A stretch of 64,000 nt of DNA from Paragordius varius (GCA_964247055.1 OZ176056.1:8928001-8992000); one strand, 5' to 3'; positions 2,370-64,000 are shown, counted from the stretch's first letter. A program made the numbers and translations. Notes: a model not told the origin generated them from the sequence alone.

Positions 2370-4964
2370 TTAAATGGGGCAAGGACAGTCAGAGAGAACA
2401 TCTCTTCCACTAGCAGATTTTGGGAAAGCTATTACATCTTGAATTGTTTGACAACCTCTAGCGAGAGCCACAATTCGATCACATCCCAGAGCTATCCCAG
2501 CGTGGGGTGGACACCCGCCTGACAATATCTCCAGGAAGTAACCGATATTATTTGGTGGATTTGATCGTCCATCACCAAATAGAATTGAAAAAACACCAGT
2601 TTGTTCAATTCTATTATGGATTCGGACTGAACCACCCCCAATTTCAACGCCATTCACAACGAGGTCATAATGTTGTGCCCGTAGCGCTAAAATTTGCTCA
2701 ACCAATTTGTCATCTTTCATCATAGTATTAAAGTTATCTTCTTTGATACTAAAGATAGCGTTTAAAGTTGATTTATGTTCCGGAATAACTGCAGTAAAGG
2801 GATGATGAACTGAACCTATGCTGACAGCGCCGTTGTTAATATTAAGATTCTTTAATTCAAACATGGGGAAATGTGTTATCCAAACAAACTCAAAATCTTT
2901 CGTCGTGTTTGATGAACGTAGAGTTTGGAGCTCTTGTTGTGAAAAGCAGTATGAAAGTAAAAGGTTCCCGAGTCTTCCCATAGCAATTTGAGCATTCTTT
3001 AAGCTATATGAAGAGTTAAAACACAGTTGAATATTTGAATCGATTTGATTTATATCAATATTGTTTGGGTTAAAATCAAGGGTATGTTGCATATGATCAT
3101 AACTTATTATAGGAATAAGGGAAGTTGTTTCGTTATTTTGATTAAAACAGTATATTATAGATTGTGATTTCTTTTTCTCAATATTAACCGTGTGTATGTC
3201 ATCACTAATAAATATTTTGCATAACAAATCTTTGAATAGAGTTGAGTCATTTCCTTGGTTTTCTATCAGGAGTTTTTCGATGTTTCGTAAAATTTTGCCA
3301 TTAATTTGCAAGCCGACCATATTTGTTTGCTTTAGATTGTCATTGTCAAACTTTTTAGTTGAAAAATATTGGAGTTGTAAAACATTGCGATATCTCAGAT
3401 CGGGTTTATCGGACCCAGAAAGTCTCATAGCTTCGTCATATGTCATTGTGGGGAATGGGGTTTGTATATTCTGTGGATTATCTATATGGAAATAAAATAG
3501 GACATCGTAAAATTAAAATATAAATCATGTTTCTTAAGGTCAAATAATATAAAAAATGAGGTTTATTTCTCACAAATGGTAAATATTGGGATTTTTACAT
3601 AAAACCAGTTGAATGATACCAATGAAGTAATATAAAACAAAAGACAAAACTTCAACGAGTGAACAAAACAAAGATAATAACGAAACTATTTTCTTATTAA
3701 ATTTTGGATTTAAAGCAATAATTTTGAATAAAAAAATGTCAATGATTTAACATTAAGATCGATAATATATAATAAAAAGCAAAAATTATTATATAAACTA
3801 AATTATAGGAATAAGCAATAACGACATGTAATTCAGAGATTTTTTATTTAACATTTTCGTGGTTTAGAATATTTAAGCTTCGATTCCGCAAACTTAACTA
3901 AAATTTTGAAAGTATATAACAATTTTTCGTTCGAAAACAACAATTGTTTAAATGTATTTACATGTATAAAAGATATATGTTCACACCTGTATCAAAGAGC
4001 GTAGGCCACGAATGTACAAGCATTCGTTCGATCAGCTGCATGATATCGTTTGGTGTTGCAAATGAAGCTTCCAAATCTATTTGAGTGAATTCGGGTTGGC
4101 GTTCAGACGAGATTCGCGTTTCATTGCGAAAACATCTAGCAATTTGGTAATATCGATCAAAACCACTAGCCATCAACGCTTGTTTAAGGATTTGCGGACT
4201 CTGGCAAAGGGCATAATAAGATGACTGATTTGATTCAAGTTTATCTATTGCATCATCGGTAGATTTTAGGGAAGATTTAACGAGAAATTCTGAGGCACCC
4301 ATATTGGGCGGTGATGGTTTATGTAGGTAGGGTGTTTCAATTTCAACAAAATTCTCAGCATCCAAAAAGTTTTTTACGCTAGACAAAAATTTAGCGCGTT
4401 TCCTTAAATTGTTTTGCATAAAATTTGTTCTGAGATAGGCATATCGGTATCTCAACTTTTCATATTCCGTATAATTGTTATCATGATTATCCATAAACAT
4501 GGATTGTGTTTCGGACATATAATTTTTGTTGATTAATTTTAGGGTTTGAGCCAAAATTTCAATTTTTCCAGTCGGCATTTTTGGATTCTCGGTTGGACGT
4601 TTAGAAATTAAGCCCTCAACCTCGATAACGCTTTGAAGCGGCATTTCTAAATCTTTGAAATCAATTGCGCTTTCACCCGCAAAAATTTGAGTAGAAAAAT
4701 TATCTAGCAAAACTTGTACAGTACCAGTTTCATCTTTAACCACCAAAAATTTATGATCGTATCGAGAATGAATAAGCCAACCCCGTATTTTTACTGCATC
4801 ATTTAGATGATTTATTGAAAGTTTCCCACATTTAACCAAGCGAAAAGTTTTCGCAGTCACGGAGATATTTGGTTTAACTATAATTATACAAATAAATACC
4901 TACATGTGCAGAAAGATTCAAAAAACGTTTGAAAAAACGCTCTACCATGCGGTACTTTTAACAT
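2370..4964 (-). CDS. DARS2: Mitochondrial-type aspartyl-tRNA synthetase, 3 exons (left-arm copy)
   Basis: Motifs match bacterial-type AspRS: OB-fold VKIRGW, FVEIETPYL, GASEFLV, YALCQSPQILKQALMASGFDRYYQIARCFRNE, RQPEFTQIDLEASF, GSDKPDLR, WITHFPMFE, HHPFTA, HYDLVVNGVEIGGGSVRIH, PPHAGIALGCDRIV, DVIAFPKS. Proposed exons are 4964-4946 (ATG TTA AAA GTA CCG CAT G|GTAGAG), 4877-3987 and 3481-2370. All introns are GT-AG with compatible phases; the total of 2022 nt gives 673 aa. The 5' micro-exon is the least certain part. Confidence 0.93.
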
Positions 4965-4992
4965 GCGTAATAGACTAATCAAGAAGGGTGAA
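4965..4992. promoter_or_regulatory. 28-bp interval between the divergent DARS2 and CIAO1 start codons (inferred bidirectional or overlapping promoter); mirrored at 63658-63685
   Basis: The minus-strand ATG is at 4964 and the plus-strand ATG at 4993; the same spacing occurs in the right arm. Promoter function is inferred from gene geometry only. Confidence 0.5.
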
Positions 4993-7900
4993 ATGCATCT
5001 GGATTTAGTGCATACTTTGTCAGATGGGGCGCATGAGGATACGGTTTGGGATATAAATTGGAGTCCTGATGGGAAATATCTGGCATCTTGTGGAACTGAT
5101 AAAATTGTAAATATTTGGGCTTTTAAAGATGGTTTACCTTTTTTTTTACTAATTATCCAGAAAGTTCTTTAAGTTGTGTGGCCGCTCTTGAAGATGGACA
5201 TAAAAGAACGATTAGGTCGATCGCTTGGTCTCCAGACAGTAAAATTTTAGCATCCGCAAGTTTTGATTCAACGATATGTATTTGGGAGCGCTCAGAAAAT
5301 GGGTACGAAGCAATTGCATCTTTGGGTAAAATTTAATTTTTTTTCTTATCGATTTTTTAAATACTCGTTAATGTTTAATTTGTTGTAATCATTTTTTATA
5401 TAAAGAATTAATATTTAATAGAAATACCTAAAATAAAGAAATTTTATTTATATAAAATTCTATATTTTTATATCCTTTTAGATTAGACAATTTTATAAAA
5501 CATAAAAATGAGTTTTTGACCAACCCTATTATATTATATTTGAAAAATAAAATCGATAGCTTATATTAAAAAATTTGAAAAATACTTTTTTAACAAAATC
5601 CTTCATTTCATATCTTATGTTTTGTCTTTATAATTTTGAACGAATATAAATTCCCATTTTTTGCATATATATGTTTAGAGGGCCATGAAAATGAAGTTAA
5701 ATGTGTAAGTTTTTCTCCTTCAGGAAAATATTTGGCAACTTGTGGTCGCGATAAAACTATTTGGATTTGGGAAAGTTAGTTATCAAAAAAACTTTTATAT
5801 TTAGAAAACTTATTTTTTAAAAAATTAACATTTATACATTTAAATAGTTGATTGTGAGATGGAATTCGAATGTTCTGGAATAATTAATAGCCACACGCAA
5901 GACGTTAAAAAAGTTTGTTGGCATCCTACTTTAGATGTAATATTTAATTTAAGTTTATTACAAATATATTTTTATAATTGTAAAATTTTAGCGTTTTTGA
6001 CTCAATAATTTTAAAAAAACTGTTGTTTTAACAAAAGAACCAGCAAAATACTTTTGGTTAGGATTTGATTTTTACCGCTTTAATGTGGATTTTATTTTGA
6101 AAAGATTATTGTTTTTCAATGGTATGTAAAATTATCGGGGTTATTATGGTTCACGAATATTCATAAATATTTAATGATTTATCTTTAAAACAATTCTCCA
6201 AAAAAATATACCATTTAATTTAAAGTTCAAATTCAAAATTATACCTTATTTTTTATCAACGGATTCATGAATGAAATTTTAATCCGGTTTTATATCAAAA
6301 ACTGAATCAACCATTTTTTACGTATGTTTCTTGTGGTTCTAAAAGCCGTCGTTATAAAAAGATTGAAACGCTTTATAAATTTATTTTTTACTCTTTTTTT
6401 CGCCTAATTTTGCGTTATTAGTCAATTTTTGTAAGATATTAATTTTAAAAACGGTTTTATAGAAGATTATTCAATGCGATTTTAATTCAAAATTAACATT
6501 TTATCATTTTTAGAACCATATTTTAATATTTTTTTTAATCTAAAACAATTTCTGTAAAGGTGTTAATCCCAGTTAAATATTTCAACTTTTTAACTGTAGA
6601 TTTTGGTTTCAAGTAGCTATGATGATACAATACGTATTCACTCTTACATGCCAGAAAGTATGGATTGGGAAACTATTCAAACTTTGTATGGTCATAACGG
6701 GACAGTTTGGTCTGCAAAATTTGCTCCATCTTATGTCACACCCTCAGATCAGCTGATTTCTCAAACTTCAAATTATAATCAATTATTATTATGGTTGTTA
6801 ATGGCTTCAGTAAGTTCAGATCAGAACCTAAAAGTTTGGGCTAATGGAACAATTAACTCCTCTAATGTAGAGAATTCTAGTCCTCAATCATTAACTGGTT
6901 TCCTATTCTTTTTGTATTGTTTTTATAAACAAGGCTTTACGGCATTTGGGATGTTTCAAATGTTTTTTAACTTAATGTTTTAAGAAATTATAAGAAAAGC
7001 AAAAAAGACTGATATTTTTATGGAATCAATCATATTTTCTGTACTCTTGATTAAATAAATCTATCTTTCCCATAATATAATTTAAATTCGTAAATATATT
7101 CTGTCTTTAAAAAAATCATGGTGTATTAAAAGTAGGGCTGTCGCTTTATACAAAATAGCTTGTCTTTAAAAACTTTTGAATTTTTACTGTATATATAAGC
7201 TTTTCTTGTTATTGTAGATTCCATAATACTTAAACCTTGGAAATGTGTTTCGACAGCTCACAAATTACATTCAAGACCAATTTATGATTTAGATTGGTAA
7301 TATTTATGTTAAAGTGAAAATAAATGATAAATTTTATAAAAAAAAATTTAAGAAAAATAATTTAAAGTAAACCACATTTTTATCCTTGAATTATTTCTAT
7401 ATAATAAATTGCTTCTATAATTTAGTTTTCTATTTCTTCTATCCCAGCCCAAAACTATAGGCTATATTAATGATATTTGAGTTTAATTTTCTTTTTAATA
7501 ATATTACCTATTACTTTTTGTTTTATCTTTACAATTTTGATTTTTACTGTAATTGTGTCCTTATAAAATGTTCTATTTTTCTTTAAAATATATTTTTAAC
7601 CATTTTTATTTTATTTTGCATAATAAAGGCACCCGAAAATACCATATCTGGTAGCTACCTGTGGAGGCGATAATGCTATAAGACTAACTCAAATAATTCC
7701 TAATAATAATGAAACACATCTTTTTTCAGCAGATAAAGACCAACAAGATTCATTAAATGAAAATCTTTATATGAAATGTAATGAAAAAGAATTTGGTAAT
7801 CAAACGAATAGTATAAACAGCGATAATAAAAGTTTGACCAACCAGAAAAGTAATTTTATAATTACAGTATAAACATTGAAAATATATACGGACTGTAAAA

Positions 7901-8440
7901 ATATAGACAATATTTTTTCCAAAAGACCACGCTGTACTTTTTGAAATTTATTTTTTTATATATAATATTGTTTTAAACTGCACAGTATGAAATAATAATG
8001 TATTGGTAATACAATTTCATAATAAAGAAAAAATTAATTATATGTTTGCCTCTTGAAAAAAAAATCATATTATACGTTTTGTCCATATAATTGTAATTGT
8101 TACTATAAATAATAATTTTATGTTAATTCAAGTTTAAATAAGCTCTCTCTTTTGTTTTAGATTTTTCTGTTAAACTTCAAATTTTAACAAAAGATAGAAA
8201 TATGTATCGTAAATTAATCCATGGAATTCCAGTATCTGGGCCAAACCAATAATACATATTATTCATTTTTATAATTTTATTTTTATATCTCTAGAATTCA
8301 CGAGTAAAATGCAGCATGAAATATTAGATGCCCACACCTCAGATATAAACGCCATAAGGTGGAATCCTGTAAAACCCCAATATTTAGCTTCCTGTTCAGA
8401 TGACTCTACTATAAAAATTTGGAAACTTTCAATATCTTAG
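4993..8440 (+). CDS. CIAO1: Cytosolic iron-sulfur assembly WD40 protein CIAO1/Cia1 (left-arm copy); exon 1 has a +2 frameshift or a 29-nt intron at 5132-5160
   Basis: WD repeats typical of Cia1: [162 protein letters not shown]. Exons are 4993-5325, 5679-5774, 5848-5936, 6600-6897, 7218-7296, 7629-7849 and 8295-8440, with consistent phases. The CDS is 1233 nt (410 aa) only if 5132-5160 is removed. Confidence 0.9.
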
Positions 8441-9345: not shown

Positions 9346-10028
9346 GATTTGATCTAGCAGCCCTTCCAAAACTTTATTGAGGCCGCGAGAAATTTCACAA
9401 GCGAAATTTTTATGAAACCTAAGTGAAAAAAAATTTTGAATCAGTAAATTCAAATTTTGGCAATAATCTAGCAAAGACTGAAAAATATTGGTTTTTACAA
9501 AATATTTAAACTTTTCTATATATATCACGAATGCGTCCCGTCTTATTTTTTGATGCGAAAATGCGGTTCGCGAAGCCTTTTGTGTTGGACATTCTTGATC
9601 TAAAGTAAAAAAATAATAGATATTTGAATCTTAATTACCAACTTAACTATAATAAATTCTAGGTTTTATTCTTTTCTGTCTGTAAGGTTTTTAAAAATAA
9701 AAGTTATTTTTGTGGATAAAATTGAAAATATGTATTCATTATCGGGACAATGGTTTACTCATCTCGCCGACGCTTAAACAAAGAAGAATATCGTTTCATA
9801 TTGGCAAATCGCATTGACTTAAATGTCTTAAATCCCCAAAACATGCCGAACCCTAGTTATAACTTTAAGTGATATTTTTTGAACCCAGGATTAAATATTT
9901 GAATGACATGAAAGAGTTTAATAGTAATGCTTAAGATGCAAATCCCTGACATTTATTAGAGAGTTTTCGAAAAAGTATATAATAATCACATTAGATAATG
10001 GGTATTTTTACATATTTTATGATTAATA

Positions 10029-13000
10029 TTAAAGAATTATTATTTTCCAATGCGAGTCAGACACAAATCTAATGCTATAGTTCCCTTTCCGAATAAAATT
10101 GTTAGGATTGGAAGGGTACGAATTCATTTTGCCATAAACGACATTGAGGATATTTCCTTTAGGTTCTACATCAAATTCTGGATACGTAACTTGAATGGTA
10201 TAAGCATTACGTCCTGTCTCATTCAACTTAACTTGATAAGTTTTGCTAGATTCATTCACCTATTTAAGGTTTATTCATAAAATCACATATGGAATTAAAA
10301 AATTCAATTGAGTCTTTCTTATTATTAAGAGAGCCTTTTTGTCACCCATTTTATAAAAACGAAATATCCCCAATTTATAGCTCTATATTGACATTAATAA
10401 TTTAACACTTCGATTTAAATTTCCTAGGGACGCCAGACTACATTTAAGTTGATATATCTATAATACTTATGAAGGAAATGGTTTTAATTTAAATATTATG
10501 CTTTTATCATAATAAAATATAAATAAGCCAAAATATCTAGATAAAGTTTTGTCATGATTTTTACCTTGGGATTTATACATAAAATACGTAATATCAAGTG
10601 TTTAAATGAATCTTATTTTATATTTCGGTGCATCAATGTTATATATATGCCAACTTTCTAAATAGTATATCGCTGTTTAAAAATATTTGATCAAAAATAG
10701 GCCTGGGCTCCCCAAAAACCCCAATTTGTATTGGAGGACTGAAATAAATGCCTTTTATTCAAGTGTTTATTACTTCAACCATATTAGAAAAATTTATGTC
10801 AAATTATATTGAGAAAAAAGAGGCCAACATTATTTCATAAGATAAAAAATGATATAAAACCTAAAAAATAAAATGAATAATTGATAGAAACCCGTCAAAC
10901 TAAAAAACTATCAAAACATTTTTATTAAATACAGTTTATTATTAAGTTTGTTCCTTTAATTGATTAATAATTAGTTAAAATAGGAGCTATAGTCAAGTAT
11001 CCTATTACATGGTAAACTCATCATAACATTTGAATACAGTATATTCACATATATGCTGGCTTATTGTTGGTTAATCGGTAATACAGTAGCGTGTGTTATA
11101 AAACAAATTTTGTCCATAATTAAATAGATAAATTAATGTGTTGTAAGATAGGAAAATTTGTTTTATTTCAAAATTTCTGATTCCCATATACTACTGTGTT
11201 GCCAACTGATCAAAAATAATGTCAATAAGCCAATATAAACCTGCCTAATATGGTTTTTTCATTTTACTATAATAATATTATTTTTCAATATTTGGAAAAA
11301 GCAATACCTCTAATTCAGTTGTGTTTCCACTCAATTGATTTTGAATTTTAATAAGGGCATGTTCATGTAACAAACCAATTTCAATCGTGTTATAATTCAA
11401 AGGCTTAAAAACGGCGTCTCTGTGGAGAAATTCCGGATTGGAAACTAAAAAGTTAACAAATTAATTTTTTTCTAAGAAAACTATTGTTAGACTGGATTTA
11501 ATTATATAAATCAAAATTTTAAATATTTAGAAGGAAGTTAAAAATAGGACTTACTGATATATCCACTAAATTTGTGGTGCAGATTAAGGTTAAATTGATA
11601 GGTGAAGTAAAGGAAAAATACCCCATAGACTCCTATAAGAATTTTAATTAAAGTTGAAGACATATAAATGATAAAATTTATCAAGATTTTAAACACCGAT
11701 TAGCACTATACCTCAATAATTATTAGATCGTCATAAAATTTTTCTTGGATTTCGACACTGTGTTCTTTAGCACTGCAATTCGGGTAACTAATTATAACTC
11801 CAACCGTCGTTTCATCAATATTTTGGAAAAATGTTTTAAACTTGTGAGTTTCAGGATAGAATAATCGATTACATTCTATATTTATATGGTGGATATATAA
11901 TCTGATAGAGATTTTTTGTTTTTTAGAGTAAATTAAGTTTTTCCAAAACAAATTAACTGCGAAAATGGTTTGCATTTATTGCGATTGACATTTCATTACC
12001 TTATCTTTTGGTCCTAGGTTACTTTTTGGGGTAGTTTTATATATTCCTGAGCTCAATTTTGTAAATAAAATACAATTTAAAAAGATATTTTAGTTAAATT
12101 TAATTTTTAAACATTGTTCTTAGGTTGTAGACTAAAAAGATCATATTTTTTACAGTTTTTTTGACTTCTAGAGTCTGAAATTGGGACAGATCCAAAATAT
12201 AATTGAAACAAACAGCTGACATAAAAATACATATTAAGTTGTTGTTGGAAAATGTAACATGAAAGCTTTTTAAAGTTAATTATTTACATTTTCAAATAAT
12301 ATAATTTATTTGCCCGTTGTATAAGCAAATAAAAAAATAGAAAAACGGCAAAAAAGTTGGAGATGAGGATTTTTTTACAATTATACATTTTTAAAAACAC
12401 AATTTTGTATGATTTCTTAATTTGGCTTAGTACCTTAAATATTTTTTAAGATATTCAAATTTCAAATCGCTCTGGGTTACAAAACTATCCCAAAAGGTAA
12501 TGGAGTGTAAACAATATAAAAGTCATTACTGTTAATAAATTTTTTAATTAAACATAAAATTACAACTGTTGTATTGTTACCAAATTATATACAGCATGAG
12601 TAAAAGTATACATTGCTAGAAAGTTATAATTATTGCCAATATTAAATACAACAAAGGGGGCAGTATTATTGGCTTATACTTATTTTTACTTTTTGCTATT
12701 AACCAATATTAATTCTCTTTGTTGTACAGGCTACTTGGCAATAATTAATACTTTCTAGCAATGTATACTTAATCATATTGTATTTCATTGCGCGCTCAAA
12801 ACAATAGTGTACACATTCAAAAAAATTAATCTTAAATTTAATAATATAGTTGTTTGTCCTAATAGAATTTCCTTTTTTTATGTTCTTTTTTTGTCAATAA
12901 TTTTATTTTTTTACTGTATTAAATTTTATACCATTTTCACGTCCTTCTTTGTATTCGATCCAAAGGTAATTATTGTATTCAAATTCACAAGTATCCTCAT

Positions 13001-14284
13001 ACGATATATTGAAATGTGTGCCATCCATTAAGTCTATAAATGTTAGAATATTTAAACGTTAATTTATAGTAAAAAAATGTTTTTTTAAACGCCCTTTACA
13101 CTAAAATTATAAATATACGGACATAATGTAAAACTAAGATCTTATATATTTTTTTGAAATGAAATACCTTGAGGATTTTTTTTATATAACTCATCGTTTT
13201 GCAAAATGGAGAATAAAACTTTATATTTTAACACATTGTTGGTATTAAATAGGTTATATAAGATAAATCAAAGATTTAAAAAATATAGTTTTATTTTTTG
13301 CAAAAAACATTTGTCTTTTTTCCGTATAATTTAAATTTTTAATGTTAAAATACCTCATAATATTATATATTGAATTATGGTATTAAATAAGGAACAATAT
13401 CTGACCTTTGCGTTCAAAATAATAAAATGCTACACGAATCGCCCTAACTTCAGTTTCTTATACCGGAAAATTATTAATTGGTAGTTTCTCATCTTTATTT
13501 TTTTTTATTGAATATACCATTTACAATTCAAATTCCCCCTTAAACAATCCAAAATCACCCTTGAACAATTCAAATTTACTCTCGAACAATTCAAATTCCT
13601 CAAATATATATGTTTTTTAAGATTAAAAATTACCCATATCTTTAATTATTTTTAGAAAAATTTAAATTTTGTTTAAAATTAAATTAATACTGAAAAAATA
13701 AATTATGCCATAAAGAAATATTTTATATTAGTAATAAATTATATTAGTTAGAAATCGCATAATTTATTTTTTGGGTAAATTTGAATTGTTCGAGGATGAA
13801 TTTGAAGTGTAAATGGTATATTTATTATTTGGGTTTCAACGACAATCGATTTTACAGTAAAGTATGAAATATAAATAAAAGATATCAGGGTTTGAAAATA
13901 TATGGTTGTCTTATGAAAAAAATATTTATCTTTTTTTACTGTATTGCTCAAATCCAATCATCACTGTCAGGCCTGGACAGGTATGCGAGTGTTAAAGCTT
14001 TCACAAACTCTGTTACAAATCTGCCTACCCTTTAATTAAAAAAGAGACGAATTAATTTGTCCAACATCGAAAAGTCAAACAAAAATTATTTTATTTAATA
14101 AATAGTTTCTTCAAAGAAATACCATATGTTTTCGCTATGATCATTGGATATTTACCATATTATATATAAGTTGGTATATCTGTGTATCAAATACGTAGAT
14201 CACACAAAACCAGAATTTAACATTTTTCCCAAAAATAATGAAACTATAATCAATATAATTCTTTATCAGGAGCGTGGCGACGCG

Positions 14285-14315
<31 letters not shown>

Positions 14316-26383: not shown

Positions 26384-26740
26384 TATAGAGCAATTAGCAT
26401 AAAAGTAGTAATAATTCTCTGTATCAAAACCAAAAGCTCAATCATAATTGATAAAGTATATTAATAATAATCCCCCTCCCCGGTTTTGTGCGCAGCGAAG
26501 TACAGTGAACAATGTTTGATAATATATTAATCAATAAACAATTAGTATATATTTAAATTCTTAACTATCATTTATTTTTGTCATATCAAACCATCTGAAA
26601 ATAAATTTTTCTACAAATCTCCACTTTTTCCACTATACAACAAACATGGGCTTGTTTTTAGTAAAATATAAAAATTATATACCATGCGTTTTCTATACCA
26701 TATGCATACACATTTATATATTTACCTTTACACCTGAAAT

Positions 26741-28770: not shown

Positions 28771-28805
<35 letters not shown>

Positions 28806-50900: not shown

Positions 50901-53900
50901 CTAATCATATTTAATTTTTGAGTTTATTAAACTTTAAAAATAATTCTTTTTCACGCAAACATATTACATTAACCAAATAAAGAACAATGCAGGTTTATAC
51001 TGTATCAATTTTATTTTTAGGACATTCATTTCTGAGATATTGCAAAATATATAATAATATGAGCCAAAAAGCAGTAATTTCGAATCAACCATATAGCTTA
51101 CCAAAAATATTCATTTGATATAATGTGGGCTAGTTTTGCAACTTTTCCATATACAGCAAAATATTTTATTACTTACCCGTAAGGCTTTTTAACAATTAAC
51201 AAATTTAAAAATGATATCTCTCAGATCCATTCAAACAAATAACTGATATGCTAATAACTATAATACAAAGGAAAATATAAAACATACTAACATTTAGATT
51301 AAATAAAAAATCATAAAAGACCATAGAATTCGTTTAAAATTGTTAAATTAATTATTGCTTAAATAGATATTTCCCCAAAAAATTTAAAATAAGATTTGTA
51401 TGTAATTTACATAGGACTATATACTTACTACCATATTAAAAACTAAATTCAAAAGACTTTAATTTTAGTTTAATTCCTAAATACAGAATTCCACCTTAAC
51501 CATGAATAAAGAAAGTCTTAATGGGCGCAATGTAGAGTTAAAGTATGATCTTGGTTTTACCCAATTTACCCATGAAATGTATATTATGTCCATTAACTTG
51601 TACGCCATTACAAGTGAATACGTTTTAGAGAATATTGAAACGACGTGGCTTGCTGAAGAACAAAACTATTTTTATGGTAGGAATCCAGAAATAATTTCAC
51701 ATTCAGGGAATTCTAACTATTCTTCTAGTGGGTCAGAATTGTCAGGAGATAAAGACGATTCTGAAATTTCTGGTAAGTTTGAGGTTTTCTAAAATTTGTT
51801 AGTGCTAAAAAATATTTACTATATATATATATTATGATTGATTTCATTGTATGTGTTTAGGCGTTAGTGCGCCCGGATCTGGCATACTATCCCAAACACC
51901 TCGTCGTCTACCCACTATTGTTAAAAAAAGTATGTTTCAAACATTTTTCATAAAATTTTAATACTTTTAGACAAGTGTAAAATTTAGAAAACATGCATAA
52001 AAGCAACATCTTGATTAAAAATGGTTAAAATTTGCCCTTTCAACATTATGGATTTTTAGTTAAATTCTCAAATCTGACCGATTATATATATATTTATATA
52101 TGATGGCCGCGTCGCCACGCTCATAATAATGTTTTTTAAAAACTTATCTTGATTGCAGTTTTATATTGCCGAAAAAAATGTTAATTTTGGTCTTGTTTTC
52201 TTGTTGTGATCTAGAAATTTGATACGATATACCAACTTGTCTAATATGGTTAATATCCAATGATCATAGCGAAAAAATATAGTATTTCTTTGAAGAAACT
52301 ATTTATTAAATAAAATAATTTTTGTTTGATTTTTCGATGTTAGACAAATTAATTTGTCTAAATGGTAAGCAGTATAAGAGTTTGTGAAAGCTTTAACACT
52401 CGCATACCTGGCCAGGCCTGACAGTGATGATGGGATTTGAGCAATACAGTAAAAAAAGATAATTATTTTTTTCATAAGACAACCATATATTTTCAAACCC
52501 TGATATCTTTTATTTATATTTCATACTTTACTGTAAAATCGATTGTCGTTGAAACCCAATTAATAAATATACCATTTACACTTCAAATTCATCCTCGAAC
52601 AATTCAAATTTACCCAAAAAATAAATTATGCGATTTCTAACTAATATAACTTATTACTAATATAAAATATTTCTTTATGGCATAGTTTATTATTTTTTCA
52701 GTATTATTTTAATTTTAAACAAAATTTAAATTTTTCTAAAAATAATTAAAGATATGGGTAATTTTTAATCTTAAAAAACATATAATATATTTGAGGGTGA
52801 ATTTAAATTGTTTGAGAGTGAATTTGAATTGCTCAAAGGTGATTTTGGATTGTTTAAGGGGGAATTCGAATTGTAAATGGTATATAAATGATAAAAATTA
52901 AAGTTGAGAAACTACCAATTAATAATTTTCCGGTATAAGAAACTGAAGTTAGGGCGATTCGTGTAGCATTTTAACATTTTAAACGCAAAAGTCAGATATT
53001 GTTCCTTGTCTAATACCATAAAGCTTTTAATATATAATATTATGAGGTATTTGAACATTAAAAATTTAAATTATACGGAAAAAAGACAAATGTTTTTTGC
53101 AAAAAATAAAACTATACTTTTTAAATCTTTGATTTATCTTATATAAACTATTTAATACCAACAATGTGTTAAAATATAAAGTTTTATTCTCCATTTTGCA
53201 AAACGATGAGTTATATAAAAAAATCCTCAAGGTAAGCTTTTCATTTAAAAAAAATATATAAGATTTTAGTTTTACATTATGTCAGTATATTTACTGTAAA
53301 GGGCGTTTAAAAAACACATTTTTACCATAAAATAACGTTTAAATATTCTAACATTTGTAGACTTAATGGATGGCACACATTTCAATTTGTCTTATAAGGA
53401 TACTTGTGAATTTAAATACAATAATTTCCTTTGGATCGAATACAAAGAAGGACGTGAAAATGGTATAAAATTTAATACAGTAAAAAATAAAATTATTGAG
53501 AAAAAACTGGAACATAGAAAAAGGATATTCTATTAGGACAAACAACTATATTATTAAATTTAAGATTGATTTTTTATGAATGTGTACACTATTGTTTTAA
53601 GCGCGCATTAAAATGCAGTATTCAAAATAAATATAAGCCAATAATACTGCCCCCTTTGTTGTATTTAATATTGGCAGTAATTATAACTTTCTAGCAATGT
53701 ATACTTACTCATGCTGTATATAATTTGGTAAAACAATCATACATACAACAGTTGTTATTATGTTTTAAATTAAAAAATTTATTAACAGCAATGAATTTTA
53801 TATTTTGTAAACACTCCATTACTTTTTGGGGTAGTTTTATATCCTAGAGCGATTTAAATTTGAGTATCTTAAAAAATATTTAAAAGCCGAATTTAAAGTA

Positions 53901-56610
53901 TCATACAAAATTGTGTTTTTAAAAGTATTATATTGTAAAAAAATCCTCATCTCCAACTTTTTTGCCGTTTTTCTATTTTTTTATTTGCTTATGCAACGGG
54001 CAAATAAATTATATTATGGTTTGAAAATGTAAATAATTAACTTTAAAAAGCTTTCATGTTACATTTTACCAACAATAACTTAATATGTATGATTTTTATG
54101 TCAGCTGTTTGTTTCAAACATATTTTGGATCTGTCCCAATTTTAGACTCTAAAAGTCAAAAAAACTGTAAAAAATATGGTCTTTTTTGTCTAATACCTGA
54201 GAACAATGTTTAAAAATTAAATTTCAACTAAAATATCTTTTTAAATTGTATTTTATTTACAAAATTGAGCTCAGGAATATATAAAACTACCCCAAAAGGT
54301 AACCTAGGCAAAACGATAAGGTAATGAAATGTTAATCGCAATAAATGCAAACCATTTTCGCAGTTAATTTGTTTTGGAAAAACTTAATTTACTCTAAAAA
54401 ACAAAAAATCTCCATCAGGTTATATATCCACCATATAAATATAGAGTGTAATCGATTATTCTACTATCCTGAAACTCACAAGTTTAAAACATTTTTCCAA
54501 AATATTAATGAAACGACGGTTGGAGTTATAATTATTTACCCGAATTGCAGTGCTGAGGAAAACAGTGTCGAAATCCAAGAAAAATTTTATGACGATCAAA
54601 TAATTATTGAGGTATAGTGCTAATCGGTGTTTAAAATCTTGATAAATTTAATTTATATGGCATAAACTTTACTTAAAATTCGTATAGGAGTCTATGGGGT
54701 ATTTTTCCTTTTTGGCCCGCAAAAACTTCACCTATCAATTTAACCTTAATCTGCACCACAAATTTAGTGGATATATCAGTAAGTCCTATTTTTAAATACT
54801 TCTAAATATTTAAAATTTTGATATAAATAATTAAATCCTGTCCAACAATAATTTTTTAAGAAAAAAATTAATTTGTTAACTTTTTAGATTCCAATCCGGA
54901 ATTTCTCCACAGAGATGCTGTTTTTAAGCCTTTAGATTATAACACGATCGAAATTAGTTTGTTACATGAACATGCCCTTATTAAAATTCAAAATCAATTG
55001 AATGGAAACACAACTGAATTAGAGGTATTGCTTTTTCCAAATATTATAAAATAATATTATTATAGTTTAAAAAACCATATTAAGTAGTTATATATTGGCT
55101 TATTGACATTATTTTTGATCAGTTGGCAACACAGTAGTATATGGGAATCAGAAATGTTGAAATAAAAATTTTTTCTTATCTTACAACACATTAATTTTTC
55201 TTAATTATGGACAAAATTTGTTATCCGATTAACCAACAATAAATGAATAAGCCAGCATATATGTGGCATACTGTATTGATATCTATTTTTTGGAACCTCA
55301 CGGTAAATATACCATTTGCACGTCAAGAGTGTCTTTAAACACTTCAAGTTGGTCCTTGAAAACTTAAGTTGGTCCTTAAAATTTTTATATTTTGATTTAA
55401 TCATAATATTTGCATCCATATTTTTATTTATTATTTTTTAACCTAATTTTCTTCATTTATTATATATTTATTTACTTAAAAATAAATTTTTATTCAAAAA
55501 CCACTTTTTTGTTTATAACTAATTTTTTTCCAATTCAACAAAATTATTAACTTTTAAATGTTTTCAATGAAAAATTGTAAATAATAACCCAGAAAATTTA
55601 TATATTTTTTAATTACGTGTTAAAATATTATAAATATCCAAAATAATTTTAAGAAAATAAAGATATACAGTTTTTCAATGATAAAAAGATATTAAAATTT
55701 ATGTGAAATGATAGAAAATAGGTTAAAAACAATAAAATAATTGAATAATATGATATGATTAAAAAAAGTTATAGACCAAACAAAAAAGTCAAAGGAACAA
55801 CTTGAAGTGTTCAATGACACTCTCGAATTGTTCAAGGACCACCTTGAAGTGTTTAAAGGCACTCTTGAAGTAGAAATGGTATATTTAGTCAAAAAGACAT
55901 GTGTGGCATTATCTAATGTAAAAAATCCAAAATATACCACTTTTTCTGTTTATATTATTTTTAGATGTGATTTACATAAAAAAATATCAATTTAGCATTT
56001 GAATAAAAACACAATATTTTGCAAAAATGTTTTAAATAAAATGGTGTCGAAGTACTTTGATATGGAATTTTTTTTCATGACAAAACTTTATCTAGATATT
56101 TTGGCTTATTTATATTTTATTATGATAAAAGCATAATATTTAAATTAAAACCATTTCTTTCATAAGTTTTATAGATATATCAACTTAAATGTAGCCTGGG
56201 GTCTCTAGGTACCCCAATTTGAATCGAAGTGTTAAGTTATTAATGTCAATATAGAGCAATAAATTGGGGAAAAATCTCGTTTTTATTAAATGGGTGACAA
56301 AAAGGCTCTCTTAATAATAAGGAAAACTCAATTAAATTTATTAATTCCATATGTGATTTTATGAATAAACCTTAAATAGGTGAATGAATCTAGCAAAACT
56401 TATCAAGTTAAGTTGAATGAGACAGGACGTAATGCTTATACCATTCAAGTTACGTATCCAGAATTCGATGTAGAACCCAAAGGAAATATCCTCAATGTCG
56501 TTTATGGCAAAATGAATTCGTACGCTTCCAATCCTGACAATTTTATTCGGAAAGGGAGCTATAGCATTAGATTTGTGTCTGACTCGCATTGGATTATAAT
56601 AATTCTTTAA
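41998..56610 (+). CDS. Orphan multi-exon secreted/surface glycoprotein (right-arm copy); 3' end and some internal exons uncertain
   Basis: Starts with a signal-peptide-like MLNLYNLSPLLWVVIYVSHVMS. GT-AG exons read by eye: 41998-42264, 42345-42450, 42529-42704, 43318-43417, 45152-45213, 45631-45708, 46119-46209, 46612-46757, 47042-47135, 47198-47340, 49649-49751, 50589-50719, 51487-51772, 51861-51929, ~52379-52425, ~53361-53461, ~54419-54611, 54688-54778, 54888-55024 and 56380-?. Most junctions are phase-compatible. Arm-to-arm indels in these exons are mostly multiples of 3, and many substitutions are synonymous. I recognised no family. Confidence 0.7.
47596..49090 (-). mobile_element. Non-autonomous, internally deleted Ty3/Gypsy-type LTR retroelement (TRIM-like), 1495 bp
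   Basis: 272-bp direct repeats at 47617-47888 and 48819-49090 look identical by eye. Element ends are TGTTAT...ATAACA, with a 5-bp TSD ATAAT (47591-47595, 49091-49095). A polypurine tract AAGGGGGAAGTGA abuts the 3' LTR on the minus strand. The interior encodes a broken gag zinc knuckle (HGPNKCPAWNRNCKCGKPNHFANV, with CRS in the shifted frame) and an integrase C-terminus (IRRH ... ERRYPERIRRKPVGFS*). It is absent from the left arm. Confidence 0.9.
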
Positions 56611-57029
56611 TATTAATCTTAAAAATATGTAAAAATACCCAATATCTAATGTGATTATTATACTTTTTCAAAAACTCTCTAATAAATGGCAGGGATTTGC
56701 ATCTTAAGCATTACTATTAAACTCTTTCATGTCATTCAAATATTTAATCCTGGGTACAAAAAAATTCTATTATAGTTATAAGTAGGGTTCGGCATGTTTC
56801 AGGCATTTCTCAATGCGATTTGCCAATAAGAAACGATAATCTTCTTTGTTTAAGCGTCGGCGAGACGAGTAAACCATTGTCCCGATAATGAATACATATT
56901 TTTGCTTTTATCCTCAAAAATAACTTTTATTTTTAAAGACCTTACAGACAGAAAAGTATAAAACCTAGAATTTATTATAGTTAAGTTGGTAATTAAGATT
57001 CCAATATCTATTATTTTTTTAGTTTAGAT

Positions 57030-58250
57030 TATTAAAGGTGTCCAATACAAATGGCTTAGCGAGCCGCATTTTCCCAATTAAAAAATCTGACGGGCCGCAT
57101 TCGCTAATATAGGCATTTTATAAATATTTTGTATAAACCAGTGGTACCCACCAAAAATATTTGACGGGCCAAATAAAATATATTATTTTTTCGAGGGCCA
57201 TGAACCTTATAATGGCAAATCCATAGCTATTTGAGACATATGCACATATTAATACTCTAAATCTGCACAATGAATTTAGCATGTAAATCCAGCTAAGAAC
57301 CCGTTTACCATTTAAAAAATAATATTTCGTTAATATTTATTTTAATATTAACCAATAATTTTTGACAAATTTAGTTTCGCCTCATGTCAGGCCAATCTTA
57401 ATACGTCGTCCAAATGATCATCGGTTAAGCGATTTCTGTATGTATTCTTAATATACTTCATTTTTGAATATGCCGCCTCACACGTGTATATTAAAAGTTA
57501 AGATAACCTGAGCACATTCTTTATATTTTCGTATTTGGCACATCTTGCCAAAATACATATCGTTCTTCCCTACAATTTTCTTGAAGATAGCCTCCCAACT
57601 AAAATCATTTTTAAAATTTAGATTTTTTAATGAAAGCGCCTGTTAAAACCAAAATGCAAGTTGCTTAATATTGGATATATCCATATGCCATGGATTTTCA
57701 ACGAGTTTTAAGCAATTTCTAAATTTTTTAATTCTTCTGAATTTCATATCATTAGATAAAAATTTCAAATCCGTCAAACTTTCTGTTATTTTTTATAAAT
57801 AATAGAATTTCAGCATTAAAACAAAAAATCTATTTAATACTTTGGTAAGGTAAGGCTTAGCTATCCACAGTGGTGTACAAAAGAATATCATCAAATTCAC
57901 TTGGGAAATCTTTCAGAAGGTTTTTGAATTAACGGCGGTTGAATTCTTTGCCACGGATGTGGTTAATATCGACAACCGATTTAATTATTGAATTGAGTGC
58001 TTTATCTTTTACACGTGAACCAAGTTGCTGATGAATAAAGCAGTAAAAGGATAAAATATTTTGCAAATTATATTTGTTTTTCAAAAGAAAAATCCTTTGT
58101 TTATTCCAGTCATAGAGGAGGGTGCCATATGTGCACGAAACCAATTTTTTCATAAATTTTTGCTACTTTATTGCCAAAATTTGGATATACCGATTCGAAA
58201 TATTTGTTATAGAAAGCAATTACATTTAGATTTCGTAAAATTTTGCAAGT
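57030..58250 (-). mobile_element. hAT (Charlie/SPIN/GTF2IRD2-like) transposase remnant
   Basis: The frameshifted translation reads APSSMTGINKGF, FYCFIHQQL and NHIRGKEFNRR*FKNLLKDFPSEFDDILLYTTV, matching the TDGAP..G / HCIIHQ / YHTEVRW region of this family. A hAT-type end at 57035-57100 contains GTGTCCAA, GCGAGCCGCA and GACGGGCCGCA. The left-arm counterpart (~9385-9600) is internally deleted. Confidence 0.7.
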
Positions 58251-58848
58251 GAAATCGAGAGCTGCTGAATATTTTTTGGAGGGGGTGAGTTGCTACGTAG
58301 TTCCTTTGTTAATTTCTTAGTGCAAATAATTAAACTGATCTATGTTAATAACTAAGGTCTAATAAAAGTACCTTAGTTATCTTATTATGGAAAAAAAACA
58401 ATTTACCAGACACATGGTCTACTTAATCACCTATTACACGGTGCGCAACAAAAAGTAAATGTTAATGAATCATTTATCATTTGAGAGCTAAAAGCTACAG
58501 GATAATGAATATCGAAATGATATATGCGGTTATAATATAAGAGAAAATTTTTTTTCTGATATTAGCCAAAATCAAACAATCTCATTTTTAACGCTTAGTC
58601 AAACAGAATTAAATACAACTAAATTTTATTTGAATTACTATAACATAAGAATGATTCAAAACGCAAAATATTATCAAAAAAGGGTTTTTTTCTTCAGAGG
58701 CACCTATAAAGACTTGCAAGAGTATAAGCTAGAAAATCGCACGCTTGGGCGACAAATTTGAATAAAAAAAAACTTGTTAATATGTGGTAAAAGATTTCAA
58801 TTTTATTTAAACTATATATTAATTCCATACATAGGGTTTGCCCAATAT

Positions 58849-59266
58849 CTCGCTTTCAAAAAAATTAAGCCTTATATAAAAAAGATATTTTTTTGATAAT
58901 TTGCACCAAAGCGAAAGGTGCTTATAATTTTTACAAAACATCCAATACATATATTATCAATATTTTTTCCAGACATTTCGATGTAGATATCTATCATCGC
59001 AGGTTTTTGATTCAAGGAATTCTTTTGCCCGAAAATTTTGATTATATATTTTTGGCGCCATTTTGGCTTTTAATACCGGCTTTAGGGCATATAAATTCCC
59101 CAAACTAGAATGATTCGATAGATCCTTTTTTCTGAATTGAATTGTATGGAAAAGGCCTTGATAATATATATTGAATGTTTTGTTAGAATTATACGCAACT
59201 TCCCCTTTGATGCAATTATCAAAAAATATCTTTTTTAGAAAAGGCTTAATTTTTTTAAAAGGCGGT
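58849..59266. mobile_element. MITE-like inverted-repeat element, right arm only
   Basis: ~110-bp imperfect inverted repeats at 58849-58960 and 59159-59266, e.g. AAGCCTT..AAAAAAGATATTTTTTGATAATT versus AATTATCAAAAAATATCTTTTTT..AAGGCTT. Confidence 0.55.
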
Positions 59267-59439
59267 ATATTTAAATTCTTTATATAGAGTATCTTTGACA
59301 AACACGCTTAAAGCTAAATTATTTGAATCAGTACGTAGAATTTTCAATACAATCTTATATTTGCACGATCCCAAGAAGTTTAATTCCACAACGAATCATG
59401 ACGCCCACACTGGCCAAAAAATATAATGAATAACCGCTA

Positions 59440-59640
59440 TCATTCAAATGGGTAGGTTAATATGGGCAAATCATATATATCGTAGAAATCCGTCTCACAT
59501 ATTAAAAACCATGCTTTACATTACAAGGTCAAGAAGGCAGACCCATAAAACATAGCCGCAAACAATTCAAAAGGAAAAAGCATAACAGATATAAACTTGG
59601 CTCTCCTAATAGAACGTTATGGAGAAAACAACTATGAGAG
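59440..59640 (+). mobile_element. Possible decayed 3' fragment of a non-LTR retrotransposon
   Basis: The frameshifted reading WANHIYRRNPSHILKTML ... GRP ... NRTLWRKQL resembles the W.GHV.R ... GRP ... DR..WR C-terminus of RTE/L2-type ORF2. It is short and degenerate. Confidence 0.3.
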
Positions 59641-59718
59641 AAATACGGTCCTTTTGGGACAACCAACCTCTTTAATGAACATTTTTAAATATATTAATCA
59701 ACACCTTGGTATTTATCA

Positions 59719-60366
59719 TCTATATATTTATAAAAATGGAAAATGCTAGCTTTGTGATCTGGTACAGGAAAACCGGTAGACCCATTCAAATACAAACTTC
59801 GAAAAAATATAATCATTAATGAATGCCCCGACAATAGCTTCGTCCTTTTTATGAAATAGGCCCCAAGTTCGGGCCCACCCCGTGTGAAAAACGTGAAAAC
59901 AGAAGTCCACAAAAATCGGTCTTTGAGACAATTTTCTGGAGAACGTGTTGGTCCATTCGATTTCAGATATGATTTTTGTTTACTTATTTTTGATCGCGCT
60001 GAACATAGTCGACTCACTTGATTTAGGCCCTCTTTTTACCCGCTACCCCCGTAAAATGCCATTTTTTTCAAAAAAAACAAATTCCACAAAAATAATTTTT
60101 TAATTGTATTTTTTTGCCCAGGTATGAGACTGTAAAAATTCAATATGGATTCCACGTATTCCCTGTTTAAAGGCAAAAATTTTAGTCAGGCGTTTCCTTG
60201 ATGATAGCTGCTGGGTAAGGAGCTACCCGCTAAAAACTGATTCCTCATGTAACTTTGTGATCTGGTACCGGAAAACCGGTAGACCCATTCAAATCCAAAC
60301 TTCGAAACCCCCCCAGAAGTCCGAAGGACTTCCTCTGGCTGCGTAGCAGCACGAGATTTAGGCTAG
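59719..60366 (+). mobile_element. Non-autonomous Helitron, 648 bp, right arm only, just downstream of the CIAO1 stop
   Basis: It sits between A (59718) and T (60367), starts TCTATATATTTATAAAAATGG and ends CTAG. Hairpins are GAAGTCC-GAA-GGACTTC (60316-60332) and GCTGC-GTA-GCAGC (60338-60350). Arm-to-arm homology breaks exactly at its 3' end. Confidence 0.8.
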
Positions 60367-60437
60367 TATAAAATAAGTTATAAAAATTTACATAAATTTT
60401 TTTTATCAATAAATCTCAAAAATATTTTAAATTGTCG

Positions 60438-63400
60438 CTATGATATTGAAAGTTTCCAAATTTTTATAGTAGAGTCATCTGAGCAGGAAGCTAAATATTG
60501 GGGTTTTACAGGATTCCACCTTATGGCATTTATATCGGAGGTGTGGGCATCCAATATTTCATATTGCATTTCAGTGGTGAATTCTGGAGATAAAAAAATA
60601 TAAACTATTTTATGTGCCATCGATTTAATAGATAATTTTGTTATTAACATGAAATTTTTGTTAAAAACTAAAAATATTCATTAGTCTTAAAACGGTTAAA
60701 AAAATAAAACAGCCAAAAACAAACACATAATTAAAACGACATTATTTCAACTTTCATTTCAAATCAATAATATTTATAAACAAAATATATACTTTGTTGG
60801 GGGGTGAAACTTTTATTATCGCTGTTTTTAATATTCGTTTGATTATAATATTCTCTTTCATTGCATTTCATATTAGGATATTTATTTAGAGATTTTTGTT
60901 GGTCTTTATCTGTTGAAAAAAGATGTGTTTCATTATTATTAGGAATTATTTGAGTTAATCTAATAGTATTATCGCCTCCACAGGTAGCTACCAGATATGG
61001 TATTTTCGGGTGCCTTTATTATTAAAAAATAAAATAAAAATGGTTAAAAATATATTTTAAAGAAAAAAGAACATTTTATAATGACACAATTACAGTAAAA
61101 ATCAAAATTATAAAGATAAAACAAAAAGTAATAAGGTAATATTTTTAACCAGAAAATTAATCTTAAATATGATTAATATAGCCTATAGTTTTGGGCTGGG
61201 ATAGAAGAAAAAAATTAAATTATAGAAGCAATTTATTATATAGAAATAATTCAAGGATAACTTTAAATAATTTTTTAGACGTTTTACATTTTGTGAAAAA
61301 TTTTATTTTTCTCTTTAACATAAATATTACCAATCTAAATCATAAATTGGTCTTGAATGTAATTTGTGAGCTGTCGAAACACATTTCCATGGTTTAAGGA
61401 TTATGGAATCTACAATAACAAGAAAAGCTTATATATACAGTAAAAATTCAAAAGTTTATAAAGACAAACTATTATTTATAAAGAGACACCCATACTTTTA
61501 ATGAACCCCTGATTTTTTTATAAACAGAATATATTTACAAAAAAAAATTATATATAGGGACAAAATAAGGTATATCAATCAAGAGTACAGAAAATATGAT
61601 TGATTCCATAAAAATATCAGTCTTTTAGTTTTTACTTTTCTTATAATTTCTTAAAACATAAAGTTAAATAAAATATTTAGAATAACATTTCAAATGCCGT
61701 AAAGCTTTGTTTATAAAAACATTACAAAAATAGGAAACCAGTTAATGATTGAGGACTAGAATTCTCTACATTAGAGGAGTTAATTGTTCCATTAGCCCAA
61801 ACTTTTAGGTTTTGATCTGAACTTACTGAAGCCATTAACAACCATAATAATTGATTATAATTTGAAGTTTGAGAAATCAGGTGATCTGAGGGTGTTACAT
61901 AAGATGGAGCAAATTTTGCAGACCAAACTGTCCCGTTATGACCATACAAAGTTTGAATAGTTTCCCAATCCATACTTTCTGGCATATAAGAATGAATACG
62001 AATTGTATCATCATAGCTACTTGAAACCAAAATCTACGGAAAAATTGAAAAAAAAATAGAATTAAAATCTTTTCAGAAACTGTTTTTAAATTTACAAGTT
62101 CAAAAAATGGTTCTAAAAGTGGTAAAATGTGAATTTAAAAATATTTTGGTATAAAGTGTTTTAACAAGTCAAAGATAATATGTTATAAAAACTATTGTGA
62201 AAGCAATAATTACTAGAAAAAACGACAAAATATTAAACTTTTTGATCGCACAAAGTAATGTATATTAAATATGGTTTAATTAAACCACAAATAATATTTC
62301 CAAATAAGCCTAAAAAATGGTTGATTCAGTTTTTGATATAAAACCGGATTAAAATTTCATTCATGAATCCGTTGATAAAAAAATATAAACAAAAATCCAA
62401 GAAAAAGGCGAATAACGGTATAATTTTGAATTTGGTGGTATATTCTTTTTTTGGAGAATTGTTTTGAAGATAAAGCATTAAATAGTTATGAATTTTCGCA
62501 AATTATAATAACCCCGATAATATATTTTACATACCATTGAAAAACAATAATCTTTTCAAAATAAAAATAAAATCCACATTAAAGCGGTAAAAATCAAATC
62601 CTCTAAAAGTATTTTGCTTTTTGTTAAAACAACAGTTTTTTGAAAATATTGACTCAAAAACGATAATATTTTACAATTATAAAAATATTTTTGTAATAAA
62701 ATTAAATTAAATATTACATCTAAAGTAGGATGCCAACAAACTTTTTTAACATCTTGCGTGTGGCTATTAATTATTCCAGAACATTCGAATTCCATCTCAC
62801 AATCAACTGAATATATAAATTTACTATTTTAAATTTAAAAAAATAAGTTTTTTAAAATAATTTTTTTTAACAACTAACTTTCCCAAATCCAAATAGTTTT
62901 ATCGCGACCACAAGTTGCCAAATATTTTCCTGAAGGTGAAAAATTTACACATTTAACTTCATTTTCATGGCCCTCTAAACAAATATATGAAAAAAATGGG
63001 AATTAAATTCGTTCAAAATTATAAAGACAAAACAGAAGATATAAAATGAAGGATTTTTTTAAAAAAGTATTTTTTAAATTTTTTAATATAAGCTATCGAT
63101 TTGACTTGAAAAATATAATAGAATATGAATGTAAATTAGTAAACACTCATTTTAATATTTCGCAAAATTGTCATCTAAAAGGACATACAAAGCATAAATA
63201 TAGAATTTTATATAATATAAATTTCTGTATTTTAGTTGTTACTATTAAATTTCTCTATTATAAAAAGTATTTAAAATATAAATTAGTAACATTATCGTGT
63301 TTATAAAATAAACTAAATTTTACCCAAAGATGCAATCGCTTCGTACCCATTTTCTTCTGAGCGCTCCCAAATACATATCGTTGAATCAAAACTTGCGGAT

Positions 63401-63657
63401 GCTAAAATTTTACTGTCAGGAGACCAAGCGATCGACCTAATCGTTCTTTTATGTCCCTCTTCAAGGGCGGCCACACAACTCAAAGAACTTTCTGGATAAT
63501 TAGTAAAAGTAACTAAACCATCTTTAAAAGCCCAAATTTTTACAGTTTTATCAGTTCCACAAGATGCCAGATATTTCCCATCAGGACTCCAATTTATATC
63601 CCACACCGTATCCTCATGCGCCCCATCTGACAAAGTCTGCACTAAATCCAGATGCAT
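60438..63657 (-). CDS. CIAO1: CIAO1/Cia1 (right-arm copy), exon 1 fully in frame
   Basis: Inverted copy of 4993-8440. ORF fragments 63313-63657, 62556-62795, 61722-62030 and 60438-60650 carry the same WD motifs. Exon 1 (63657-63324) is open from MHLDLVQ to YEAIASL with the same donor GTAAAA. Confidence 0.9.
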
Positions 63658-63685
63658 TTCACCCTTCTAAGTTTATCTATCACGC

Positions 63686-64000
63686 ATGTTTAAAGTACCG
63701 TATGGTAGAGCGTTTTTTCAAACGTTTTTTGAATCTTTCTGCACAGCAGTAGGTATTTATTCTTATAATTATAGTTAAACCAAATATCTCCGTAACTGCG
63801 AAAACTTTTCGCTTGGCTAAATGTGGGAAACTTTCAATATATCATCTAAATGATGCAGTTAAAATACGGGGTTGGCTTATTCATTCTCGGTACGATCATA
63901 AGTTTTTGGTGGTTAAAGATGAAACTGGTACTGTACAAGTTTTGTTGGATTATTTTTGTACTCAAATTTTTGCGGATGAAAGCGCAATTGATTTCAAAGA
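63686..64000 (+). CDS. DARS2: 5' part of a second DARS2 copy, truncated by the window end
   Basis: ATG TTT AAA GTA CCG TAT G|GTAGAG (63686-63704) is followed by a 70-nt intron. The exon from 63775 reads VKPNISVTAKTFRLAKCGKLSIYHLNDAVKIRGWLIHSRYDHKFLVVKDETGTVQVLLD and is the reverse complement of 4652-4877 with scattered substitutions. Confidence 0.85.

Follow-up and report, generated by a model that had tools for sequence, protein, structure and literature searches.

Palindromes of the mammalian sex chromosomes, such as P1-P8 of the human Y and those of the primate and mouse X, consist of inverted arms longer than 10 kb around a unique spacer, and they are defined by an arm identity above 99%, or above 99.9% on the Y (10.1101/800185; PMC3723533). 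Their protein-coding arm genes are kept as pairs under purifying selection, and both gene conversion in multi-kilobase tracts and structural change near the inner arms and the spacer have been described (10.1101/800185; PMC3723533; PMC8327919). In this work, we analysed a 64,000-nucleotide stretch of the Paragordius varius genome (contig C7:8,928,001-8,992,000, hereafter the window), in which a first inspection of the DNA alone (the sequence-only reading) had noticed a giant interrupted palindrome. Its arms carry the genes DARS2 and CIAO1 and a large lineage-specific gene. We propose that it is a genuine old inverted segmental duplication, partly re-homogenised by gene conversion between the arms, a reading to which we assign a probability of about 0.8.

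The locus shares with the mammalian X and Y palindromes the long inverted arms around a unique spacer, the pairs of genes under purifying selection and the signs of conversion in multi-kilobase tracts. Unlike them, its arms are only ~91% identical, and no more than 2.5 kb (19,559-22,011 in the left arm) exceeds ~98.5-99%. Conversion appears to have been patchy and episodic rather than arm-wide, and without a GC-biased signature, and the cargo includes the housekeeping genes DARS2 and CIAO1 instead of testis gene families. The analogy with Y palindromes drawn by the sequence-only reading is therefore a loose one: it holds for arm size, spacer and, on indirect evidence, conversion, and it fails for an arm identity above 99%. 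SD12A1 of mouse chromosome 12, a palindromic autosomal segmental duplication, also has diverged, intrachromosomal arms, and it spans megabases in a mammal, whereas our palindrome occupies 72 kb of a compact 110-Mb invertebrate genome (PMC13688818). The locus is best classed as a palindromic segmental duplication in which conversion was episodic and regional, and this type of structure is already known. The host genome, compact, AT-rich and invertebrate, is without a close relative among the sequences of the databases searched, and the locus suggests that large palindromes that carry genes and undergo conversion between their arms also occur outside the sex chromosomes of vertebrates. It would also hold a readable record of an old duplication, a gene-sized conversion and then a 2.5-kb conversion, with three gene pairs under different regimes.

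An interrupted palindrome with three gene pairs

The assembly comprises 110.6 Mb in 44 contigs, and the G+C content of the window is 26.5%. We added a 30-kb flank on each side (124 kb in total); coordinates above 64,000 denote the continuation of C7 past the end of the window. A self-comparison, which the sequence-only reading had named as the check on its claim, was made with BLAST. Within the window, it yields a collinear reverse-strand chain between 4,652-25,569 and 64,000-39,615, and positions 1-4,700 match, in reverse, the DNA immediately past the right end of the window. When the comparison was repeated with the flanks, the left side of the chain covered 413/418-25,989 and its right side 39,512-71,957. 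The left arm measures 25,572 bp, the right arm 32,446 bp and the spacer 13,522 bp. The whole palindrome is ~72 kb long, and its right arm ends 8 kb outside the window. As the high-scoring segment pairs (HSPs) have E=0 over 1-7 kb, a match by chance is excluded. No mirroring was found beyond the outer seams at 418 and 71,957 in the 30-kb flanks compared. The right arm is the longer one because of its own insertions, namely a long interspersed nuclear element (LINE), a 1.48-kb element and ~1.6 kb between CIAO1 and the large gene. The arm length of at least 21 kb first proposed was thus a lower bound set by the window edge, and the unique spacer, then put at ~14 kb, is confirmed as 13.5 kb of DNA without arm homology.

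From left to right, the locus reads DARS2, CIAO1, large gene, spacer, large gene, CIAO1, DARS2. The mirror recurrence announced as exact by the sequence-only reading therefore holds for the order of the genes and not for the arms themselves, which are ~91% identical and have each received transposon insertions of their own. Identity at aligned bases ranges from 80 to 99.7%, with 91.3% over the 20,443 well-aligned sites. Each of the three arm genes has two copies in the 110.6-Mb assembly, all within the palindrome, and the reading frame is open in each of these six copies. By convention, an inverted segmental duplication is intrachromosomal, at least 1 kb long and at least 90% identical, and the arms have this length and identity, in reverse orientation and on the same contig.

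The three pairs have evolved differently. For DARS2, we obtained synonymous divergences (dS) of 0.146 and 0.180, with ratios of non-synonymous to synonymous divergence (ω) of 0.11 and 0.25, and for CIAO1 a dS of 0.106 and an ω of 0.11. Given these ω values, both pairs are under strong purifying selection. The large gene, with a dS of 0.043, a non-synonymous divergence (dN) of 0.024 and an ω of 0.56, evolves fast. It had been suggested that a palindrome can maintain or diversify its paralogues, and both outcomes are found here, with the large gene still similar between arms and DARS2 and CIAO1 diverged.

Divergence strata and probable gene conversion

Divergence between the arms falls into strata. 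Calculated on non-coding, well-aligned sites only and located by left-arm coordinates, the divergence K is 0.167 in the 3' flank and introns of DARS2, 0.115 in the introns of CIAO1, 0.059 in the outer half of the large gene and 0.022 in its inner half, 0.045 in the first 1.1 kb upstream of that gene, and 0.175 in the innermost 1.6 kb of the arm (χ² test of heterogeneity among strata, p=5.5e-88). The low-divergence stratum, 14.8 kb long, corresponds to the transcription unit of the large gene, extended by 0.43 kb on the 3' side and by 1.05 kb on the 5' side. Within it lies a near-identical core, in whose bins 0.25-1.5% of the sites differ. The longest identical run in this core reaches 411 bp, as against the few tens of base pairs that we estimate for the mean divergence. 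Synonymous sites follow the same pattern, dS being lower in the large gene than in DARS2 (Fisher p=3e-8).

The miniature inverted-repeat transposable elements (MITEs) shared by the arms at matching positions are 99.0-99.7% identical in the core, 97% in the stratum with K≈0.05 and 85% near the inner seam, and unrelated members of the same MITE family are ~76% identical. As the identity of shared MITEs varies with their position, divergence is set by the place in the arm and not by the class of sequence.

Non-reciprocal exchange is the only process that explains these nested strata well, and we infer from them that the mosaic arose by gene conversion between the arms, in line with the arm-to-arm recombination envisaged by the sequence-only reading. 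In the scenario that we favour, a single old event would have placed a mirror-image copy of ~25 kb, containing DARS2, CIAO1 and the large gene, on the other side of the spacer, which carries a MAGUK gene and a CBM14 exon. The arms would then have diverged to ~15-17% at neutral sites (K≈0.17), each gaining its own transposons. Later, a non-reciprocal exchange would have re-homogenised the 14.8-kb block coinciding with the large gene, and a more recent conversion would have affected a tract of ~2.5 kb inside this block. The 14.8-kb conversion possibly occurred in two tracts instead of one, since the alignment is poor around arm-specific insertions at ~16.8-17.9 kb.

Alternatively, the palindrome might be real and its mosaic due to staged duplication or to regional differences in mutation rate or constraint. 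The match between the low-divergence block and one transcription unit could suggest transcription-linked repair or constraint, and the length of the block and the missing GC-biased signature would also fit. However, palindromes have been shown to undergo conversion in tracts of several kilobases (PMC3723533). Had an inner copy been made in a second, younger step, it would be young up to the seam, yet K is 0.12-0.3 in the innermost 1.6 kb; since the low-K block is flanked by high divergence on both sides, duplication in two steps is disfavoured. As for constraint, it is implausible for selfish intronic MITEs whose identity falls from 99-99.7% in the core to 85% at the seam. An effect of transcription is at odds with DARS2 and CIAO1, both of them transcribed, in whose introns K is 0.11-0.17. 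We therefore consider it improbable that the strata arose without conversion.

Several points nevertheless weigh against an old duplication with later conversion. The structure is read from the sequence of one assembly, and a look-up of the exact MAGUK and DARS2 exon products returned no independent record. Unlike in mammalian palindromes, there is no G+C excess in the converted strata, and 14.8 kb is long for a conversion tract. The alignment of the innermost 1 kb consists in part of MITE-family sequence of uncertain orthology. Finally, the databases hold no sister-species locus by which the age of the duplication, the ancestral arm or the direction of conversion could be polarised.

It is tempting to speculate that selection decides where conversion is tolerated, so that it was kept only over the transcription unit of the fast-evolving, secreted-type large gene, whose two copies would thus have stayed near-identical in divergent orientation, and DARS2 and CIAO1 escaped it through subfunctionalisation, of which the unrelated, frame-shifted N-terminal peptides of the DARS2 copies, putatively for targeting, might be a sign. 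We regard this idea as doubtful. If it were true, the locus would allow concerted and divergent evolution to be compared, as in a natural experiment, inside one duplication, in a little-studied animal lineage.

Two loci or two haplotypes

False duplications in assemblies have four hallmarks, namely discordant linked reads, 1-copy k-mers, a read depth reduced by half and gaps that separate the copies, and false heterotype duplications arise in highly divergent regions, often on the same scaffold (PMC9516828). Our locus resembles the latter in that two diverged copies of single-copy genes lie near each other on one scaffold. The arms might thus be the two haplotypes of one heterozygous locus, one of which was inverted and wrongly placed 13.5 kb from the other, or they might have been joined through a chimeric read. 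Such an origin would be compatible with the presence of exactly two copies of every arm gene, with the equal rates at which the arms evolve and with the intactness of all copies, as would be expected of alleles.

Nevertheless, the locus differs from false heterotype duplications in its lack of gaps, its unique flanks, its very high synonymous divergence and its different transposon content. The 124 kb examined (window -30 kb to +94 kb) contain no N, so that there is no gap between or around the copies. A misplaced haplotig needs two clean joins, and both outer seams abut clean, unrelated unique DNA. A dS of 0.15-0.18 in DARS2, together with different LINE, LTR-like (long terminal repeat) and MITE insertions and a 7-kb difference in length, would be extreme for alleles. 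In addition, the spacer with its MAGUK gene is present as one collapsed copy, and haplotypes are not expected to differ in nested blocks whose divergence varies 50-fold. As for chimeric reads, those that fold back would yield identical arms without a spacer. An assembly misjoin is thus unlikely, and we judge the haplotype or chimeric-read origin to be very improbable.

The arms rather appear to have had a long separate history, as indicated by dS, by indels that keep the frame, by their own insertions and by symmetric counts of changes. Exon indels are multiples of three with two exceptions, one at a mini-intron of CIAO1 and the other in the presequence exon of DARS2, and both copies read through in each case. 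With a decayed DARS2 fragment (see below) as outgroup, the changes over 1 kb number 46 on one arm and 54 on the other (p=0.42).

For annotators, an old duplication would mean that DARS2 and CIAO1 are truly two-copy genes here, and that apparent frameshifts can be introns of 22-29 nt. In counts of gene families, the duplicated region needs read-level validation first.

Genes, insertions and repeats

Table 1. Coordinates of the palindrome, its divergence strata, genes and insertions, counted from the first nucleotide of the window.
Feature	Position	Strand	Evidence or remarks
Left arm	418-25,989		reverse-strand HSP chain and MAFFT arm alignment
Spacer	25,990-39,511		without arm homology; unique except for dispersed transposon copies
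Right arm	39,512-71,957 (C7:8,999,957)		HSP chain and arm alignment
Low-divergence stratum	left 9,600-24,360; partner 40,927-57,027		14.8 kb, K ~0.02-0.06
Near-identical core	left 19,559-22,011; partner 43,307-45,765		2.5 kb, mostly intron with MITEs
Innermost arm segment	left 24,361-25,989		K 0.12-0.3, MITE-rich, as diverged as the outer arm
Large gene, left	10,029-23,310	minus	ATG at 23,310; at least 15 candidate exons
Large gene, right	41,998-56,610	plus	ATG at 41,998
DARS2, left	2,370-4,948	minus	exon 1 4948-4900; intron 4899-4878 (22 nt); exon 2 to ~3970; intron; exon 3 3494-2373
DARS2, right	63,686 to ~70,116 (leaves the window at 64,000)	plus	open frames
CIAO1, left	4,993-8,440	plus	8 coding pieces; PDB matches collinear
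CIAO1, right	60,438-63,657	minus	8 coding pieces
MAGUK gene	26,741-30,920	plus	Pfam PDZ, SH3 and guanylate-kinase exons
CBM14 (peritrophin-A) chitin-binding exon	33,770-34,057	minus	Pfam
Dispersed transposon copy with one ~570-580-bp satellite unit	34,865-37,560	plus	at least 40 genomic copies, 83-85% identity
LINE, right arm only	65,300-68,846	sense to right DARS2	3.5 kb, in the first long intron of right DARS2; domain matches
LTR-like element, right arm only	47,610-49,090		1.48 kb; 281-bp direct terminal repeats 99.3% identical
Insertions between CIAO1 and large gene, right arm only	57,105-58,044 and 59,720-60,377		within 57,105-60,377
MITE, left arm only	25,564-25,904		near the inner seam

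The large gene has ~800 codons, and both copies are open and begin with a hydrophobic, signal-peptide-like N-terminus. Its exon boundaries are approximate, and the exons were compared singly in all searches. Twelve exons tested individually matched no Pfam family, and an exhaustive search with a 103-residue exon among 1.84 billion representatives returned no credible relative. The one candidate, P0121, was judged a chance match: this bacterial protein contains InlB B-repeats and an FGE-sulfatase domain, its score was summed over its own repeats, and its pairwise tblastn E-value is 0.6. The gene had been described as coding for an orphan glycoprotein. At the level of exons, it is indeed an orphan; as for the glycoprotein, the 24 N-X-S/T sites, compared with ~13 estimated from composition, might point to one. 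Both copies read outwards from the spacer, as had been claimed. Both copies of the arm genes are presumably expressed.

As for the aspartyl-tRNA synthetase gene, two of its exons cover the Pfam families PF01336 (anticodon-binding OB fold) and PF00152 (tRNA-synt_2, class II core). Its relatives are named mitochondrial aspartate-tRNA ligase or msd1, the best being ~31-34% identical over the full exon, and by these matches we identify the gene as DARS2, of the mitochondrial/bacterial type. Both large exons are open in both arms, with indels that are all multiples of three. The first small exon (4900-4948 and 63686-63752) differs by 2 nt between the arms and is followed by a 22-nt GT-AG intron (left 4,878-4,899, right 63,753-63,774), the removal of which leads from an ATG-initiated frame into exon 2 in each copy. 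The possibility that the right copy lacks a start was therefore rejected. Because the copies use different ATGs and different frames in exon 1, their presequences, of 16 and 22 codons, are unrelated; the mature N-terminus that follows is identical. Elsewhere on the contig (C7:1,080,881-1,081,859), we found a decayed, frame-shifted piece of the DARS2 C-terminus (~97 codons) with ~0.7 kb of 3' flank, at 71% identity. It begins exactly at a MITE terminal motif (window 1,686-1,732) and may be the relic of an older duplication or a piece captured by a transposon.

The second gene contains WD40 repeats according to Pfam. Its best natural-protein matches in the PDB are human CIAO1 (3FM0, E=2e-51, residues 13-99), fly Ciao1 and yeast Cia1. 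Exon 4 matches residues 164-205 of 3FM0, and the matches to 3FM0, 6TBL and 2HES are collinear, which identifies the predicted product as CIAO1, the cytosolic Fe-S assembly WD40 protein. Both copies harbour a GT...AG mini-intron with a branch-point-like motif, of 29 nt on the left (5,132-5,160) and 27 nt on the right (63,492-63,518). Left unspliced, the left copy runs into a stop, and removal of the mini-intron restores its frame. The hypothesis that this copy is a frameshifted pseudogene was rejected, the +2 difference falling inside the mini-intron. Judging from the reading frames, this 2-nt difference is tolerable only if the mini-intron is spliced out. The resulting loop has a length close to that of human CIAO1.

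The spacer was said to hold single-copy MAGUK and chitin-binding genes. Their Pfam names are upheld, and for the MAGUK exon we found a single copy in the assembly. An open frame of 111 codons (29,346-29,678), unusually rich in G+C (51%) and flanked by the SH3 exon and the guanylate-kinase exon of the MAGUK gene, has no Pfam match; it may be a HOOK/linker exon or something else.

The insertions specific to the right arm include the LINE in DARS2, which codes for an apurinic-type endonuclease, a reverse transcriptase and a PHD-like finger, and the 1.48-kb LTR-like element, which is a young insertion. The insertion at 59,720-60,377 includes one satellite unit.

It could be asked whether transposons brought about the duplication, through transposase-mediated alternative transposition or through a complex event that also copied a block made of a transposon and a satellite unit. 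Such a 2.7-kb block, with transposase-like open reading frames and a satellite unit, occupies 34.9-37.6 kb in the spacer and recurs at 74.0-76.6 kb, immediately beyond the right arm, in direct orientation and with 80-82% identity. Moreover, both inner seams are located in MITE clusters, and beyond each outer seam abundant repeats are found at a distance of 95-140 bp. However, the block belongs to a family of which at least 40 copies resemble the spacer copy (83-85% identity) more than the right-flank copy does, so that the two are independent insertions; the idea that the direct repeat is a by-product of the duplication was rejected in view of this dispersed family. No seam falls at the terminus of an element, a hAT-type seam is unsupported, the open reading frames of the block have no transposase match in Pfam, and the repeats flanking the left outer seam bear no relation to those flanking the right one. 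We thus find it hardly credible that the old duplication had such an origin.

Outside the right outer seam, at a distance of 140 bp, positions 72,098-72,387 correspond to a young, abundant repeat of ~290 bp, the copies of which are 91-94% identical. As they often occur as same-strand pairs 1.2 or 4.3 kb apart, they are probably the terminal repeats of a longer element. The locus is situated ~0.55 Mb from the end of the contig. A tandem array starts 4.3 kb beyond the right arm and extends from 76,300 to at least 94,000 (C7:9,004,300-9,022,000+). Its unit is ~570-580 bp long, and self-BLAST offsets reveal higher-order periods of ~1,140, 1,720 and 2,280 bp. Single units of this satellite are also found at 36,970-37,387 in the spacer and in the right-arm insertion at 59,720-60,377.

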